Counted from the stretch's first letter, positions 10,136 to 63,531 are shown. The stretch is 64,000 bases of DNA from IMGVR_UViG_3300046808_001241:153183-217182; one strand, 5' to 3'. Numbers and translations: made by a program. Notes: a model not told the origin generated them from the sequence alone.

Positions 10136-10199
10136 TAAAATTACTTATTCAAAGAAAATTTGAATGAGATTTTTGAAATAAAATTGATAAATAAGATTC

Positions 10200-12014: not shown

Positions 12015-13718
12015 ATGTTTACACGCGTATTTGATACAAAGTCTTTTATCGATAAATCCAAACAGAAATTTAGTTCCAAATTTAGTTACGAGGATACGGT
12101 ATATACAAAATCAACAAATAGACTTAACGTAATTTGCAGCATTCACGGCAAAGTCGAAATTCTTCCAGGAGTGCACTTGTCTGGAGCGGGATGCCCGAGC
12201 TGTTCGAGGGCGTTAAATGGCTTGAGTCATAGAATGGACACTGAAACGTTTATTAAAAGAGCTCAAGCTAAACATAATAATTTTTACAATTACGACAAAG
12301 CAACATTTCAAGGTAGTTTAAAAAACCTAATAGTCACTTGTCCTGTGCACGGAGATTTCGCAATTCAAGCAAGTCGACATATAAATAACGGAGCTGGTTG
12401 CTCAAAGTGTGGTTTTATTCGTCGTGTAAAAAAATGCACTACCCCACTCGATGTGTTTTTAGAAAAGACATCCAAAAAACCAAATTTCGAAAATTATGAT
12501 TTCAGTTTAGTTAACTTTAAAAATAAAAAAGAATGGGTTACCGTTATTTGTAAAAAGCACGGAGAGTATAAAACTAAACCTAGATATATTGATAATAGTG
12601 CGTTTTTCGGTTGTAGTCAGTGCAAATGCGAAAGCAGAACTTTCACTACTGATACTTTTATCGAAAAAGCTAAACAAATACATGCCGAAAGATATCTTTA
12701 TGATAGAGTCGAATATAAAGATTCACACACAGAGGTGACACTAATCTGTAAAACTCACGGAGATTATATTTGCAAACCTTATGTACACTTGGCGGGAGGA
12801 GGCTTTTGTCCAAGCTGCACTAACAATGGTGTAAGTTCTTATGAGAGAGAAATAAAATTATTTTTGCAACAAAACGGCATCAGCATAGAATCTTCTTTTA
12901 GAGGATTTGACGGATTGAAGGAAATAGATTTAATTTGTCACAACAAAAAAATAGGAATTGAAGTTAATGGGTTATATTGGCACTGTGACTTATACAAAGA
13001 AAAAAACTTTCATAAACACAAAACGGAAACTTTGTTAAAGCAGGGATATCGACTAATTCATATATTTGAAGACAGCTGGCTTCTCAAAAAAGACGTTTGT
13101 TTGTCAATTTTATTGAATGCGTTTAATAAAACTCCCAATAAAATTTACGCAAGAAAGTGTGAACTAAAACTAATTTCAGATAAAGAGTCAAAACATTTTT
13201 TAAATGCAAACCACGTACAAGGTTCTTGCGTTTCTAAAATAAGATATGGTTTATTCTATAATAACGAGCTTGTATCGGTTATGACCTTCGGCTCTAACAG
13301 AAAAAATTTGGGCAATAAATCAAAACCAAATGAATACGAACTACTAAGGTTTTGTAACAAAACCTACACCAATGTCGTTGGAGGAGCTTCTAAACTGTTT
13401 GCTTCTTTCATCAAACAACACAACCCTCGGAAAATAACAAGCTATTGCAATAGAAGTATCGGAACGGGAAATCTATACAAGCAGCTTGGATTTCAGTTTT
13501 TATACAATACGCCTCCAAACTATTTTTATGTCAGAGGAAGTACAAGATTGCCGAGATTTAAATTTCGAAAAGATGTGTTAATTAAACAAGGACATGATAA
13601 AAACAAAACAGAAGCTTGCATTATGAAGGAATTAGGGTATAATAGAATTTATGACTGTGGAAGCATGAAATTTGAATGGACAAATAATCAATCATTTTCC
13701 GAAGATGACTTGTTTTAA
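12015..13718 (+). CDS. Free-standing Hef-like homing endonuclease (repeated CxxHG/CPxC zinc modules, PD-(D/E)xK/Vsr-like nuclease domain)
   Basis: Four FIxKA..H..Y.Y...C..HG...CPxC repeats; EIDLICHNKKIGIEVNGLYWH; LIHIFEDSW; ELLRFC..VVGGASKLF; lies between nrdB and nrdA. Confidence 0.8.
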   Translation: MFTRVFDTKSFIDKSKQKFSSKFSYEDTVYTKSTNRLNVICSIHGKVEILPGVHLSGAGCPSCSRALNGLSHRMDTETFIKRAQAKHNNFYNYDKATFQGSLKNLIVTCPVHGDFAIQASRHINNGAGCSKCGFIRRVKKCTTPLDVFLEKTSKKPNFENYDFSLVNFKNKKEWVTVICKKHGEYKTKPRYIDNSAFFGCSQCKCESRTFTTDTFIEKAKQIHAERYLYDRVEYKDSHTEVTLICKTHGDYICKPYVHLAGGGFCPSCTNNGVSSYEREIKLFLQQNGISIESSFRGFDGLKEIDLICHNKKIGIEVNGLYWHCDLYKEKNFHKHKTETLLKQGYRLIHIFEDSWLLKKDVCLSILLNAFNKTPNKIYARKCELKLISDKESKHFLNANHVQGSCVSKIRYGLFYNNELVSVMTFGSNRKNLGNKSKPNEYELLRFCNKTYTNVVGGASKLFASFIKQHNPRKITSYCNRSIGTGNLYKQLGFQFLYNTPPNYFYVRGSTRLPRFKFRKDVLIKQGHDKNKTEACIMKELGYNRIYDCGSMKFEWTNNQSFSEDDLF

Positions 13719-29676: not shown

Positions 29677-30771
29677 TTAATAAAGCCGTTCGCATTGCTT
29701 TAAATGACTAGGCTTTCGTCTACCTCCAAAACACCATGCTAAGTCTAAATCTTTTTCTGCATAAGACCAAAGATACCCATGAGCTGATCTTGTTCCATTG
29801 CTTTTTCTGCAGCACTCTATAATCGCAGACGTATGGTTCTTGCCAACTGCCTTGGCTGCGTCAAGAAAACTACGAAACGTTTGTATGTATTCCCCTGAAA
29901 AGTTATATTGAGTTACCGCTCTAACTGCTCTTCCTGTACTCTTTTTCATTTTGGGTCGAGGGTCAATGGGTAGGCCACATTTAAAGGCTGCGACCCTTTG
30001 AGAGCGATTAGTTGGTATATATGGTCCTGGGGACTTGAAAGTAAATGTCCATCTAAATCCCAAAGATATAGAACCTATTCTAGCGCTTTTGTATATATTT
30101 CCTGAACCTTCTTGTCTATAACCTAGTATGCAATCCTTTGCAGTTTGGGCATTGGGATATCGGTTTATGTAGTTCCCGTGCAAATCCCATTGATATACAG
30201 GTCTTTTCTTCTCAAAACACCACTCCAAATCAAGCTGCTCGTTTTCATAAGACCAAAAATATCCTCCGGTAGATTTTTGACCGTCGCTTCTCATGCAACA
30301 CGCACTTACTGCAGAAGAAGTGTTTTGTCCGCAATGTTGCGCAGCAGCCAAACAACTGGGAAACGAGCGAATATATTCTCCGAACAAGTTATATTGCTTG
30401 ACTGGGGAACATAATTTATGACTCGGTTCTTCTCCCAGCTTTATGTTGGTAAGAATACCGCCCTCATCGAGATTGGATCGTCCCCATTTTTGTATCAATC
30501 TTTTTTCTTCATCTAATGCAGTTTGCTCGTCAAAACTTTCAAATACTATTTCATATTTTGGTCCATAACCTAACTTTTTTAATTTTTCTATTTTATTAAA
30601 TTTGTATGGATTGCTCATTTTATCAGAAGACCAGTTGTGATAATGCGCTTCGACTCGCTTTCCTTTTCCCTTTCCAACATAAAAAGGTTGATCATTTCTT
30701 GGGTCTATGAGAACATAGACGTAGTACATAGAATCTGCAGGTAGTTTTTGATTTTCGTTTGTCATAAGCAT
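29677..30771 (-). CDS. Free-standing GIY-YIG homing endonuclease with NUMOD1 repeats
   Basis: YYVYVLIDPR..PFYVGKG..R; three PV.QY...GEYI..F.S...AA modules; likely start is the second ATG at 30765. Confidence 0.85.
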   Translation of the reverse strand: MLMTNENQKLPADSMYYVYVLIDPRNDQPFYVGKGKGKRVEAHYHNWSSDKMSNPYKFNKIEKLKKLGYGPKYEIVFESFDEQTALDEEKRLIQKWGRSNLDEGGILTNIKLGEEPSHKLCSPVKQYNLFGEYIRSFPSCLAAAQHCGQNTSSAVSACCMRSDGQKSTGGYFWSYENEQLDLEWCFEKKRPVYQWDLHGNYINRYPNAQTAKDCILGYRQEGSGNIYKSARIGSISLGFRWTFTFKSPGPYIPTNRSQRVAAFKCGLPIDPRPKMKKSTGRAVRAVTQYNFSGEYIQTFRSFLDAAKAVGKNHTSAIIECCRKSNGTRSAHGYLWSYAEKDLDLAWCFGGRRKPSHLKQCERLY

Positions 30772-30781
30772 AATTACTTAT

Positions 30782-30853
30782 GCTCAAGCGCTTTATTTTT
30801 TGGTTCGTTTGACATAAGCACTCTTCCTACCATTAAAGCGCTTGAGCTTTTTT
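30782..30853 (+). ncRNA. Candidate hairpin small RNA A (antisense to GIY-YIG 5' end)
   Basis: TAATTA 30771-30776, N5, GCTCAAGCGCTTTA/TAAAGCGCTTGAGC 14-bp stem, 38-nt loop, T6; loop 30804-30820 matches 30754-30770 at 16/17. Confidence 0.7.
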
Positions 30854-46012: not shown

Positions 46013-46668
46013 TTTGAAGCTACTAGTAGAGTTGTATTGCCTTGTTTTTCTGAAATTGTATCAACGAAAACGTTTGGAAAGTTTTTACTATACATCGTTT
46101 CAATAATTCTTTTATACAATTTCAGCCGTTTAGATTCAGAGTTATCCACCCTAATAACAAATCCTCTTAGATTAGTTCTACCATAAAAGCTTTGATTAAT
46201 TGCTCGTTCAATACCTCTAAACAGTTCTACGGAATAAATTCCAGTTGTTCCTGTCAACTTTGTACCAGAGCTTTCATCCACAAACATAACATAAGCCATT
46301 TGTTCGTTATTTTTTAAATCTTTAAAGTTGTTCTTATAATTGTCAGAAACGGTATTGTCATACTTGGCTGTGTTCATCTGGTTTCCAACAAGAAACTGCT
46401 TTGTAAGATCTGATGTGATAAAATTAATCTTCACAAAAAACTTCTGACCGTTCTTTAAAACAATTTCGTAAACATCTTCTTCGCCATGTTCCGTCTTCTT
46501 TCCTTTTTCAATTTGTTCAATGCTTTCAAACAACCAAGCCGAGCTGCTATTCAAAAAGAAATCATCAGAAAGAACTTCATCAAGGTTGGACTCATTTATC
46601 AAAGCTTCAATATCTTTCATCTTTTGATAGATGTCCTCCAAAGTCAAATTGTACGAATAAGGTTTCAC
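46009..46668 (-). CDS. Hypothetical protein
   Basis: 219 aa ORF coupled to the nucleotidase gene. Confidence 0.7.
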   Translation of the reverse strand: MKPYSYNLTLEDIYQKMKDIEALINESNLDEVLSDDFFLNSSSAWLFESIEQIEKGKKTEHGEEDVYEIVLKNGQKFFVKINFITSDLTKQFLVGNQMNTAKYDNTVSDNYKNNFKDLKNNEQMAYVMFVDESSGTKLTGTTGIYSVELFRGIERAINQSFYGRTNLRGFVIRVDNSESKRLKLYKRIIETMYSKNFPNVFVDTISEKQGNTTLLVASK

Positions 46669-59615: not shown

Positions 59616-59648
59616 AAAAGCTCCCAAAGACTAGCTAAGGGAGCTTTT
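59614..59648. terminator. Bidirectional terminator
   Basis: A6-GCTCCC...GGGAGC-TTTT. Confidence 0.7.
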
Positions 59649-59664
59649 GTTAGGAGAGAAGAGC

Positions 59665-59919
59665 TTAAACTTCCTCAGAAGCTACTGGAAGGAGAGCCTC
59701 ATACTGTTCTTGAGTAAGTTCATCACAAGCCTCAGCAGCAAACCTCTGAGCAATTGGTTCGATAGCTGCAATTAAGCAGCAACCATCTTCTGCCTTTGTT
59801 GCTTCTGCTGCGGGAGTAAACCATGTAGAAGCATGATTATTAGGATAACCAGACTCTGCATCCATAGCAAGTCTAATTGTTTCGTATTTATCGGGCATGA
59901 TTTTGAAGTATTTGTTCAT
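59665..59919 (-). CDS. Cassette 3 gene B (unrelated body, LLPVASEEV end)
   Basis: Shares only the C-terminal ~9 codons with cassette 1/2 gene B. Confidence 0.75.
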   Translation of the reverse strand: MNKYFKIMPDKYETIRLAMDAESGYPNNHASTWFTPAAEATKAEDGCCLIAAIEPIAQRFAAEACDELTQEQYEALLPVASEEV

Positions 59920-62336: not shown

Positions 62337-62410
62337 GCAGTATTAGTTTAATGGTAGAACGGAGCTCTTCCAAAGCCCAGACGAGAGTTCGATTCTCTCA
62401 TGCTGCACCA
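62337..62410 (+). tRNA. tRNA-Gly(TCC)
   Basis: GCAGTAT/ATGCTGC acceptor stem, D arm GTTT..GAAC, loop CTTCCAA, T arm GAGAG-TTCGATT-CTCTC, encoded CCA; one A-C mismatch in the anticodon stem. Confidence 0.92.
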
Positions 62411-62554
62411 TTCTCTACCAGAACATTTTCTCTCCCTTCTCTCTACACTCTTCTCTCCCGAAGGACAGATCAACAGTTTACACAGCTCTTGATTCTCAAT
62501 ACTTTACATCAGTTCTAACAAAAAGAACAACAACAAGTTACAAACTGTCCCAAT

Positions 62555-63175
62555 TCTTATAAAGCTTTTCAAATCAACAAGTAACGTAAACCCTTTAAAG
62601 CCAACGAGCTACACAAGATAAAATCTATATACCCCTGAGTAACAAACCTTGAAAGAGATTGATCTCTCGTTAGCCCTGTCCTTGTTTTTGGTCATCCGAG
62701 GCTCGCTGACCTTTTCCGAATATGATTCTATCTTCAGAGCTTTGGTTGGACAAGTCACCAAGAATTTTGGGGCCTTTAAGTCTCACTCAATGACTTTTTC
62801 GGTTAGGTGGCGCTGTGGACATAATCCCCCCGTGGACCCTTTTGAAAGGGTTGGGAGGATTATTTGACACTTCAATACTTTTCGTATGAGTCTGTATGCC
62901 GCGTAAGGTCTTTCGACCGTAGTTCTTCAGATTACTTCTAATCAACGACTCTGGTTCCTATATCATCGATTCGAACTACTCCCCACATTCGGAACGGGTT
63001 TTCATTCATTCAGATTTGGTTAGCTAGCAGTCCACTCCTACACTCCAGACAAGAGCTTATAGTGGATGTTGTTTAACGAGTGACGTTCTCATTGAGTCCT
63101 TTGACTCGAACCAAACTATTCGTTGATGGTCGTCCTAACTCGCTTCAACCATTACAGTTAAAGCTTTATGTTCAT
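62555..63175 (-). ncRNA. Large structured ncRNA candidate (ROOL/GOLLD-like)
   Basis: No credible ORF; GATAAATA promoter at 63180-63187; 10-bp end-to-end helix 63160-63169/62559-62568; many hairpins including GGUC-GAAA-GACC; next to a tRNA. Confidence 0.65.
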
Positions 63176-63239
63176 ATTTTATTTATCTATTTCCTTGAAA
63201 TTTTTTTGAATTATTGTATGTTTTGTATAAATAATTTTT

Positions 63240-63311
63240 GCTCCAGTACAGAGATTATTCTTTAAACTCGCTTTAAGGCTTTATGTTCACCCTCTGTACT
63301 GGAGCTTTTTT
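63240..63311 (+). ncRNA. Candidate hairpin small RNA B (antisense to large ncRNA 5' end)
   Basis: TATAAATA 63226-63233, GCTCCAGTACAGAG/CTCTGTACTGGAGC 14-bp stem, 38-nt loop, T6; loop 63274-63289 matches 63159-63174 at 15/16. Confidence 0.7.
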
Positions 63312-63327
63312 AATAATTAAATTTCCA

Positions 63328-63531
63328 ATGAATTACAATTTTGAAGTCAAAATAAGAAACAACGAGCCGATCGACAGAGCACTGAAAGTATTAAAAGGCA
63401 AGCTTGAATCAGATGGCCTCTTTGATGTAGTCCGTTCGAAGAGATCGTTTGAGACTCCGACCCAAAAGAAGAAGAGGAAACTCAAAGCTGCCCACAAGAA
63501 GGCCAAGCAGGCCAGATCTCGCAGAGACTAG
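63328..63531 (+). CDS. rpsU: Ribosomal protein bS21
   Basis: EVKIRNNEPIDRALKVLK...RSFETPTQKKKRK; start reassigned to MNYNF, 8 nt after AATAATTA. Confidence 0.88.
   Translation: MNYNFEVKIRNNEPIDRALKVLKGKLESDGLFDVVRSKRSFETPTQKKKRKLKAAHKKAKQARSRRD

Follow-up and report, generated by a model that had tools for sequence, protein, structure and literature searches.

The hairpin in front of the ribosomal protein S21 gene of this phage belongs to an undescribed family of predicted small RNA genes of about 72 nt, in which a large loop matches, cassette by cassette, the first bases of the predicted transcript of the neighbouring divergent gene, either a homing-type endonuclease mRNA or a structured non-coding RNA. 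The most likely role of such an RNA, inferred from sequence alone and held with a probability of about 0.6, is to silence that transcript. We analyzed a window of 64,000 nucleotides (64 kb), which is the end of a 217-kb IMG/VR contig, and found two units of the family in it, at 63240–63305 and at 30782–30847. Relatives in metagenomes added 14 more, giving 16 distinct units in all.

In the first unit, TATAAATA lies at 63226–63233 (+ strand) as the predicted late-type promoter and is followed by 6 nt. A perfect 14-bp stem (63240–63253 with 63292–63305) then closes a 38-nt loop (63254–63291), and T6 at 63306–63311 forms the predicted terminator tail. The + strand RNA folds at -26.7 kcal/mol with z = -5.8, which none of 200 shuffles matched. 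The loop carries a two-part guide (63265–63289), in which 9 nt (63265–63273) repeating 63137–63145 are joined directly to 16 nt (63274–63289) repeating 63159–63174, with the 13 nt between the two upstream segments left out. The long segment has a single difference (A63162 against G63277), which becomes a G-U pair if the + strand RNA meets the − strand RNA. The best match between loop and upstream sequence is 17 nt, while the shuffle mean is 9.3 and 0 of 500 shuffles reach it. On the − strand, the predicted promoter GATAAATA of the divergent RNA lies at 63180–63187, in a block shared by all four S21-linked variants described below, and the match starts 5 nt after it. The predicted duplex between the guide and the − strand RNA is -32.6 kcal/mol, against a median of -11.6 for non-cognate targets.

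These features had been pointed out in a sequence-only reading of the window, and every item that it listed is indeed present in the sequence. Two of them need qualification. The G-U compatibility is particular to this copy, since the single mismatches in the three other S21-linked variants are U-C or A-C. Moreover, 63137–63145, which had been placed in the first hairpin loop of the divergent RNA, is partly inside a helix in the minimum-energy fold and not wholly in a hairpin loop. The interpretation offered in that reading, a fixed scaffold with a swappable guide of about 16 nt aimed at transcript 5′ ends and possibly read by a phage protein, is only partly supported. The comparative data support a family, a hairpin kept by compensatory changes, a loop that co-varies with the 5′ end of the divergent neighbour, and a match beginning where the transcription start of the neighbour is expected. 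However, the scaffold is fixed in geometry only and stem sequences differ between units. In addition, each RNA is hard-wired to the transcript of its own cassette and inherited with it. Nothing suggests a freely swappable guide, and no evidence bears on a protein that reads a common scaffold. The endonuclease partners had not been seen, and the "large ncRNA" of that reading proved to be a mosaic.

The second unit in the window consists of CATAATTA (30769–30776), the hairpin 30782–30847 and T6 at 30848–30853, all on the + strand. It has the same 14-bp stem, 38-nt loop, T6 and terminal GCTC/GAGC, with otherwise unrelated sequence. The pattern GCTC-N50-66-GAGCTTTTT occurs twice in the window against 0.07 expected. 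The loop segment 30806–30822 copies 30755–30771 with one mismatch, a 17-nt match that 0 of 500 shuffles reached. On the − strand, that stretch is the start of an open reading frame (29677–30771), whose ATG codons lie 10 and 16 nt from the hairpin, and Pfam identifies the product as a GIY-YIG/NUMOD1 homing endonuclease (NUMOD1, E = 2.4e-16; LEM-3-like GIY-YIG, E = 1.7e-7).

The contig comes from a myovirus-like phage with a baseplate wedge protein and ribonucleotide reductase. The gene right after the first hairpin (63328–63531, + strand) encodes ribosomal protein bS21 (Pfam Ribosomal_S21, E = 1.9e-16) and is a neighbour rather than part of the unit. It has its own motif, AATAATTA at 63312–63319, 8 nt before its ATG. 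A tRNA-Gly lies at 62337–62410, and no credible reading frame was found on either strand between the two genes. We searched GenBank phages for similar DNA and found none, and a scan of a genome collection gave no match and therefore no clue to the host.

We then used S21 homologues to collect short metagenome contigs (numbered with the prefix L), which show several alternative states upstream of S21. The same hairpin is found in L002, L003 and L036, while three other hairpins with different stems and loops are found in L004/L005 (variant A2), L033–L035 (A3) and L012/L014/L015 (A4). L006 carries an HNH endonuclease gene with its own hairpin, and L007–L011 have no hairpin at all. The cassette-free relative L007 has AATAAATA 7 nt before its S21 ATG. 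Pattern scans and a covariance model added endonuclease-linked units in L004, L012 (two), L014, L017 and L028–L032. In all, four of the 16 units, including the one at 63240, face a non-coding partner upstream of S21, and twelve face a divergent reading frame, with free-standing endonuclease genes as partners (GIY-YIG at 30782, HNH-like elsewhere). Most of the partners other than the GIY-YIG gene share an N-terminal motif, and six of the ten scanned have weak but recurrent C-terminal HNH matches, two of which reach the cut-off of Pfam. These units share ancestry and are therefore not 12 independent observations, and about six target classes can be told apart.

The hairpin is conserved as a structure on the + strand. 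In an alignment of 14 units, the 16 stem pairs are 96.4% paired and 11 of them change on both sides (43 cells), values that no shuffle of 500 reached, whereas sliding the partner by 1–3 columns lowered pairing to 26–53%. The stems hold 13 G-U pairs on the + strand against 1 on the − strand, and all 16 units have a T-rich tail on the + strand only. A covariance model built from this alignment found only the two known units in the window, scoring 71 bits (30782) and 67.9 bits (63240), with the next hit at 15.6 bits, and it recovered two unit types that were not in its training set.

The loop tracks its neighbour. With at most one mismatch, the best match between each loop and the 200 nt upstream is 12–19 nt, while shuffled loops average about 9 nt. 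The observed length is reached in 0–7 of 500 shuffles for 13 of 14 units, and downstream flanks give 6–11 nt. When gaps are allowed, the endonuclease-linked loops match 25–35 nt, and each loop belongs to the target class of its own neighbour. The four S21-linked variants carry unrelated guides, all in two parts, each matching its own neighbour. Their short and long target segments are 9 + 16, 11 + 13, 8 + 14 and 13 + 14 nt, separated in the target by 13, 25, about 29 and about 20 nt. Their predicted cognate duplexes are -28 to -33 kcal/mol, against non-cognate medians of -8 to -14. Of the four single mismatches between guide and target in these variants only one is G-U compatible, and therefore mismatches give no independent support for RNA pairing.

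On the − strand, the match begins 4–5 nt after a NATAA(A/G)TA motif in nearly all units, this being GATAAATA in the S21-linked units and (G/C)ATAAGTA in the endonuclease-linked ones. On the + strand, a NATAA(A/T)TA motif lies 5–7 nt before the stem in the 14 aligned units, with one deviant (ATAAGTA in L028), and in the two units added later. The motif sits 3–10 nt before many gene starts in the window. In fact, 12 of 22 NATAAATA lie 5–10 nt before a gene ATG on the same strand, where control motifs of shuffled order gave 0–4. Counted within 14 nt before an ATG, ATAAATA scored 11 of 22 and ATAAGTA 4 of 6, while thirteen control heptamers gave 0–2. NATAAATA is the late promoter reported for T4-like cyanophages, and TATAAATA that of T4 (PMC2984593). 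Such placement could also reflect a translation signal rather than a promoter. Because the same motif precedes hairpins that contain no reading frame, we read it as a promoter, which implies near-leaderless mRNAs. It is not kept as a start codon either, since in four units (L014, L017, L030 and L032) the ATG that overlaps the motif on the other strand is out of frame or stops after 3–26 codons. In the endonuclease-linked loops, the part corresponding to the promoter is interrupted by 1–2 nt insertions, while the transcribed part stays intact.

The partner of the hairpin at 63240 is a predicted structured non-coding RNA on the − strand (about 62812–63174, its 3′ limit being provisional), with a variable 5′ part of about 110 nt followed by a conserved core. 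Its first 16 nt (63159–63174) are complementary to loop 63274–63289 with one G-U, and the corresponding match starts 5 nt after GATAAATA in all four variants. The segment complementary to loop 63265–63273 (63137–63145) lies 13 nt further in. The − strand RNA from 63174 leftwards folds with z = -3.1, against z = -1.4 for the + strand. The four variants, although only four sequences were available, give 37 consensus pairs, 18 of them with compensatory changes, and the segment 63137–63145 lies in a conserved internal helix (alignment columns 41–47 with 108–114), with which binding of the small RNA should compete. Variant A4 has no ATG at its 5′ end, so the tiny frames seen in A1–A3 are not conserved. 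A decayed endonuclease gene in 62411–63240 was ruled out, as six-frame translation shows stops throughout and tblastn with ten endonuclease proteins gave nothing better than E = 0.26. As for the mosaic, only about 62812–63174 travels with this hairpin, while 62410–62772 is also present in L006 and L007, which lack this cassette.

The cassette holding both predicted RNA genes (62827–63326) behaves as mobile. The window and L036 differ at no more than 5 positions over these 500 bp, and there are 3 differences in each of the shorter overlaps with L002 and L003, whereas the S21 coding sequence and the left flank differ by 10–20%. In L006, the stretch 62811–63299 is exactly what the HNH endonuclease cassette with its own hairpin replaces. 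Together with the alternative cassettes, or none, at the S21 site, this is the pattern of a recently spread element, as for homing endonuclease genes.

We further compared the units with described classes of RNA and DNA elements. Against Rfam 15, only tRNA passes the gathering threshold in the window and in the loci searched. The best matches at the hairpins are mir-785 at 24.1 bits against a threshold of 62, and mir-42 at 20.2 bits against 70 on the L014 variant, both chance hits to any long hairpin, and the non-coding partner has no Rfam match at gathering or E-value thresholds. Although tRNA genes are of similar length and other phages have TATAAATA before tRNAs, neither ARAGORN nor the Rfam tRNA model called a tRNA at either hairpin in the window. 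The units are not CRISPR-like mini-arrays, since the arms are inverted rather than direct and differ between units. The G+C-containing stem followed directly by a U-tract agrees with an intrinsic terminator. However, the loops of 35–45 nt do not, and a terminator scan allowing loops of 3–8 nt did not report the hairpin. PeSL (promoter-early stem-loop) cassettes of T4-type phages have an early sigma-70-type promoter plus a conserved stem-loop flanking shuffled genes; the motif here is the late-type NATAAATA, not a sigma-70 promoter.

The most economical reading is a self-contained small RNA gene inside a mobile-looking cassette. In this view, the late-type promoter (NATAAATA) starts transcription at the foot of a 13–16 bp hairpin, which together with its U-tract ends the transcript at about 72 nt, and the loop of 35–45 nt pairs with the first 15–30 nt of the RNA made from the back-to-back promoter. 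In 12 units, that RNA would be the near-leaderless endonuclease mRNA (leader of about 0–12 nt), so that pairing covers its start codon and should block ribosome entry, and could also create a double-stranded RNase substrate. In the S21-linked units, two-part pairing should remodel or destabilise the 5′ domain of the non-coding partner, for which repression has as yet no defined consequence. The small RNA would thus act as a built-in repressor or keeper of the product of its own cassette. Hairpin conservation, strand preference, guide-target co-variation, motif placement and cassette context are established by the sequence comparison, whereas transcription of either strand, termination, pairing in vivo and repression as the outcome are inferred. 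Among the points that weigh against this reading, a 38-nt loop is far outside the usual range for intrinsic terminators, and identity between loop and target could be maintained by gene conversion between the two nearby direct repeats rather than by selection for pairing.

Other explanations appear unlikely but cannot be dismissed. The best of them is that the hairpin is only a terminator or insulator at the edge of an inserted cassette, stopping + strand read-through that runs antisense across it, with the likeness of the loop a relic of the duplication that created it. The T-rich tracts agree with this, an ordinary terminator in the window ends in the same GAGC-T6-AAT style, cassettes lie antisense within runs of + strand genes, and in the endonuclease-linked units the loop looks like a decayed duplicate of about 35 nt that includes the promoter part. 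But a relic would decay evenly, whereas identity is highest exactly over the part predicted to be transcribed and tracks the neighbour through at least 10 different target sequences. Loop length is also held at 35–45 nt, which a plain terminator does not need, and a promoter-like motif precedes the stems. It is less likely still that the hairpin is the 5′ leader of the downstream gene, here S21, acting as a 5′-terminal stabiliser or an attenuator, with the discrete small RNA at most a by-product. The hairpin does start at the predicted +1 and lies 16–23 nt before a + strand ATG in both window copies, and phage S21 expression has been linked to late replication (PMC9723584). However, S21 has its own motif between the T-tract and its ATG (AATAATTA here) or, in L004 and in cassette-free L007, AATAAATA, units precede unrelated downstream genes, and the match of the loop to the divergent neighbour would remain unexplained.

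Action at the DNA level is similarly doubtful. The repeats could be paired binding sites for the endonuclease or another protein, as I-TevI binds an operator that resembles its homing site and overlaps its late promoter (PMC2988022), or a structured recombination site at the cassette edge, as integron attC sites are. Homology between alternative cassettes resumes inside the 3′ arm at 63299, and the cassette behaves as mobile. Nevertheless, the same architecture serves GIY-YIG genes, HNH-like genes and a non-coding partner with at least 10 different sequences, which would require as many DNA-binding specificities. The G-U asymmetry and the T-tract point to RNA, and no recombinase was seen next to the units. 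The least likely alternative places function on the − strand, with the hairpin in the 5′ untranslated region of the endonuclease mRNA displaying a decoy copy of the start region or a short upstream reading frame. Only 10–23 nt separate hairpin and ATG in the endonuclease-linked units, and several loops contain an ATG followed by a short frame ending near the main start. As read from the sequences, however, these upstream frames run from 4 to 13 codons, and variant A4 has no 5′ ATG, and we rejected them. Moreover, the G-U pairs favour the + strand and the T-tract would be a leading A-tract on the − strand. In the four S21-linked variants, a − strand promoter motif lies between target and hairpin, so that RNA would not contain the hairpin, and ATAAGTA at the foot of the hairpin behaves as a gene-start signal elsewhere in the window.

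The organisation resembles that of type I toxin-antitoxin loci with divergent, non-overlapping antitoxin RNAs (tisB/istR-1, shoB/ohsC, zorO/orzO, dinQ/agrB) and especially RalR/RalA of prophage rac, in which the small RNA gene lies beside its target in the opposite orientation and complementarity of 16–21 nt arises from a duplicated segment (PMC4147584, PMC4041452). Back-to-back, non-overlapping placement is found in all 16 units, with orientation judged from motifs, G-U bias and T-tracts, and the complementarity is 12–19 nt ungapped or 25–35 nt with gaps. The partners here are endonuclease-like proteins of 212–364 aa or a non-coding RNA, and not a hydrophobic toxin of less than 60 aa, although the DNase RalR, silenced through a 16-nt match, is a published exception to this rule (PMC4041452). 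The pairing would involve the extreme 5′ end and start codon rather than a long 5′ UTR, the guide sits in the large loop of the terminator hairpin, and the genome is that of a lytic-type jumbo phage. The pairing geometry is that of IS10 RNA-OUT, an antisense RNA of about 70 nt that is essentially one stem-loop, whose loop pairs with the 5′ end of a mobile element's mRNA, start codon included, to limit the element's enzyme. RNA-OUT overlaps its target in cis, whereas the guide here is a separate copy 26–82 nt from the target, and the two genes do not overlap if the − strand RNA starts after its motif. In T4-like phages, endonuclease genes (I-TevI to III, segB, mobE of Aeh1, seg43(25)) are held in check by a late promoter facing the gene and a stable hairpin in the same transcript that sequesters the ribosome site, while the stable hairpin just upstream of seg43(25) does not sequester it (PMC2988022). 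Here the consensus motif faces away, the loop copy has the same sense as the start region on the − strand and so cannot pair with it in cis, and the stem arms do not include the start. CfrI of cyanophage S-PM2 is likewise an antisense RNA linked to a homing endonuclease gene in a T4-like phage, but it is about 225 nt, cis-encoded through the endonuclease gene and psbA, and not a compact hairpin with a duplicated guide (PMC2984593). For the S21-linked variants, ColE1 RNA I is comparable in that a small antisense RNA targets the 5′ domain of a long structured non-coding RNA (RNA II) and can alter its folding. RNA I is cis-encoded, however, and RNA II has a primer role, while none is known for the partner here.

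Free-standing homing endonuclease genes are the main selfish elements of T4-like phages, and their known controls are promoters, in-cis hairpins and autorepression (PMC2988022). A full-text literature search found no description of a small RNA partner for such genes. A dedicated antisense RNA travelling with each cassette would be a further layer of control, organised like a type I toxin-antitoxin pair, and would explain how such nucleases are tolerated in antisense orientation inside essential gene runs. The same design beside a conserved structured RNA in a nearly invariant 500-bp cassette points to a second, protein-free kind of cassette. An unlikely possibility is that this cassette is an RNA-only selfish element spreading between phage genomes as a homing endonuclease gene does, perhaps with the long RNA as a guide or ribozyme and the hairpin RNA as its keeper, or, more broadly, that the hairpins are scaffolds read by a dedicated phage protein. 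When we looked for the guide sequences in cassette-free relatives as a test of RNA-guided homing, only one 12-nt coincidence was found, downstream of S21, for variant A4. The family also offers a compact natural design of promoter, stem, loop guide of 16–25 nt and terminator that could be tested as a tool for silencing phage genes. Moreover, the motif statistics suggest that many genes of this phage are near-leaderless, which is relevant to why it carries an S21 gene.

Similar-looking sequences outside the family were also examined. A scan of viral contigs for ATAAATA-N-GCTC...GAGC-T5 returned only tRNA genes, including true ones in the unrelated phage contigs L025 and L027, and random hits, and an exact scan of viral contigs for the shared block of the S21-linked variants found only the source contig. 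A third inverted repeat with a 38-nt spacer in the window (46050–46125) lies inside a coding region, has no T-tract, gets no covariance-model hit and is due to chance. The hairpin at 59620–59682 (− strand) is an ordinary terminator after a small gene, which ends in the same GAGC-T6-AAT style as the unit at 63240 but has a loop-upstream match of only 9 nt.

The 500-bp non-coding cassette that holds both RNA genes (window 62827-63326) is almost identical in four genomes, even though the flanking S21 gene differs by 10-20% among them. This suggests recent horizontal spread of a protein-free cassette. A conserved structured RNA core with compensatory changes was found on the minus strand of the window (62812-63174) and on the minus strand of three metagenome contigs from relatives, at 600-962 in L005, 600-956 in L014 and 1-270 in L035. 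This core has no Rfam match, and its 5' part of about 110 nt varies. Moreover, a 12-nt string identical to the 5' end of the partner RNA of A4, one of the S21-linked hairpin variants, lies beside a stem-loop downstream of S21 in genomes that carry other cassettes. It is located just after S21 at about 524-537 in L002, about 1138-1151 in L004 and about 2449-2462 in L007 (all contigs of relatives), and may be due to chance or be a trace of recombination.

We also found further mosaicism in the region between the tRNA and S21. Small reading frames of 70 and 82 aa (L006 1422-1848; L004 80-328) are inserted in some relatives at the point matching window 62772/62799. In addition, the tRNA-Gly(UCC) of the window (62337-62410) is replaced in two relatives, at about 910-985 in L006 and about 1310-1390 in L007, by an unrelated stretch of about 75 nt, which is flanked by the same GATTCTCTC repeat and in which no tRNA was found by ARAGORN. 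As for the S21 gene itself, gene callers extend it to 82 aa from an ATG inside the hairpin loop (window 63283-63531, protein P0003), while homologues of 67 aa and the Pfam match indicate that the true start is 63328.

Across the whole window, NATAAATA and ATAAGTA lie 3-10 nt before many start codons, for example at 10186(+), 22542(-), 25323(-), 27320(-), 37218(-), 49415(+) and 60762(-). If the motif is the late promoter, many genes of this S21-encoding phage would therefore be leaderless or nearly so. At the divergent endonuclease starts in three contigs of relatives (L014, L017 and L030), the first ATG, where it is out of frame, opens a frame of 3-4 codons whose TGA overlaps the true ATG (ATGA), an arrangement suggesting translational coupling from a 5'-terminal start. 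In two unrelated phage contigs, L025 (6010-6099) and L027 (702-788), ATAAATA followed by 4-8 nt leads straight into a tRNA gene that ends in a T-tract, which is the same promoter-to-RNA-to-terminator layout as here. Elsewhere in the window, a 567-aa protein encoded at 12015-13718 (+) combines DUF723 with a weak restriction-endonuclease-like domain match and a weak Mom-like domain match.
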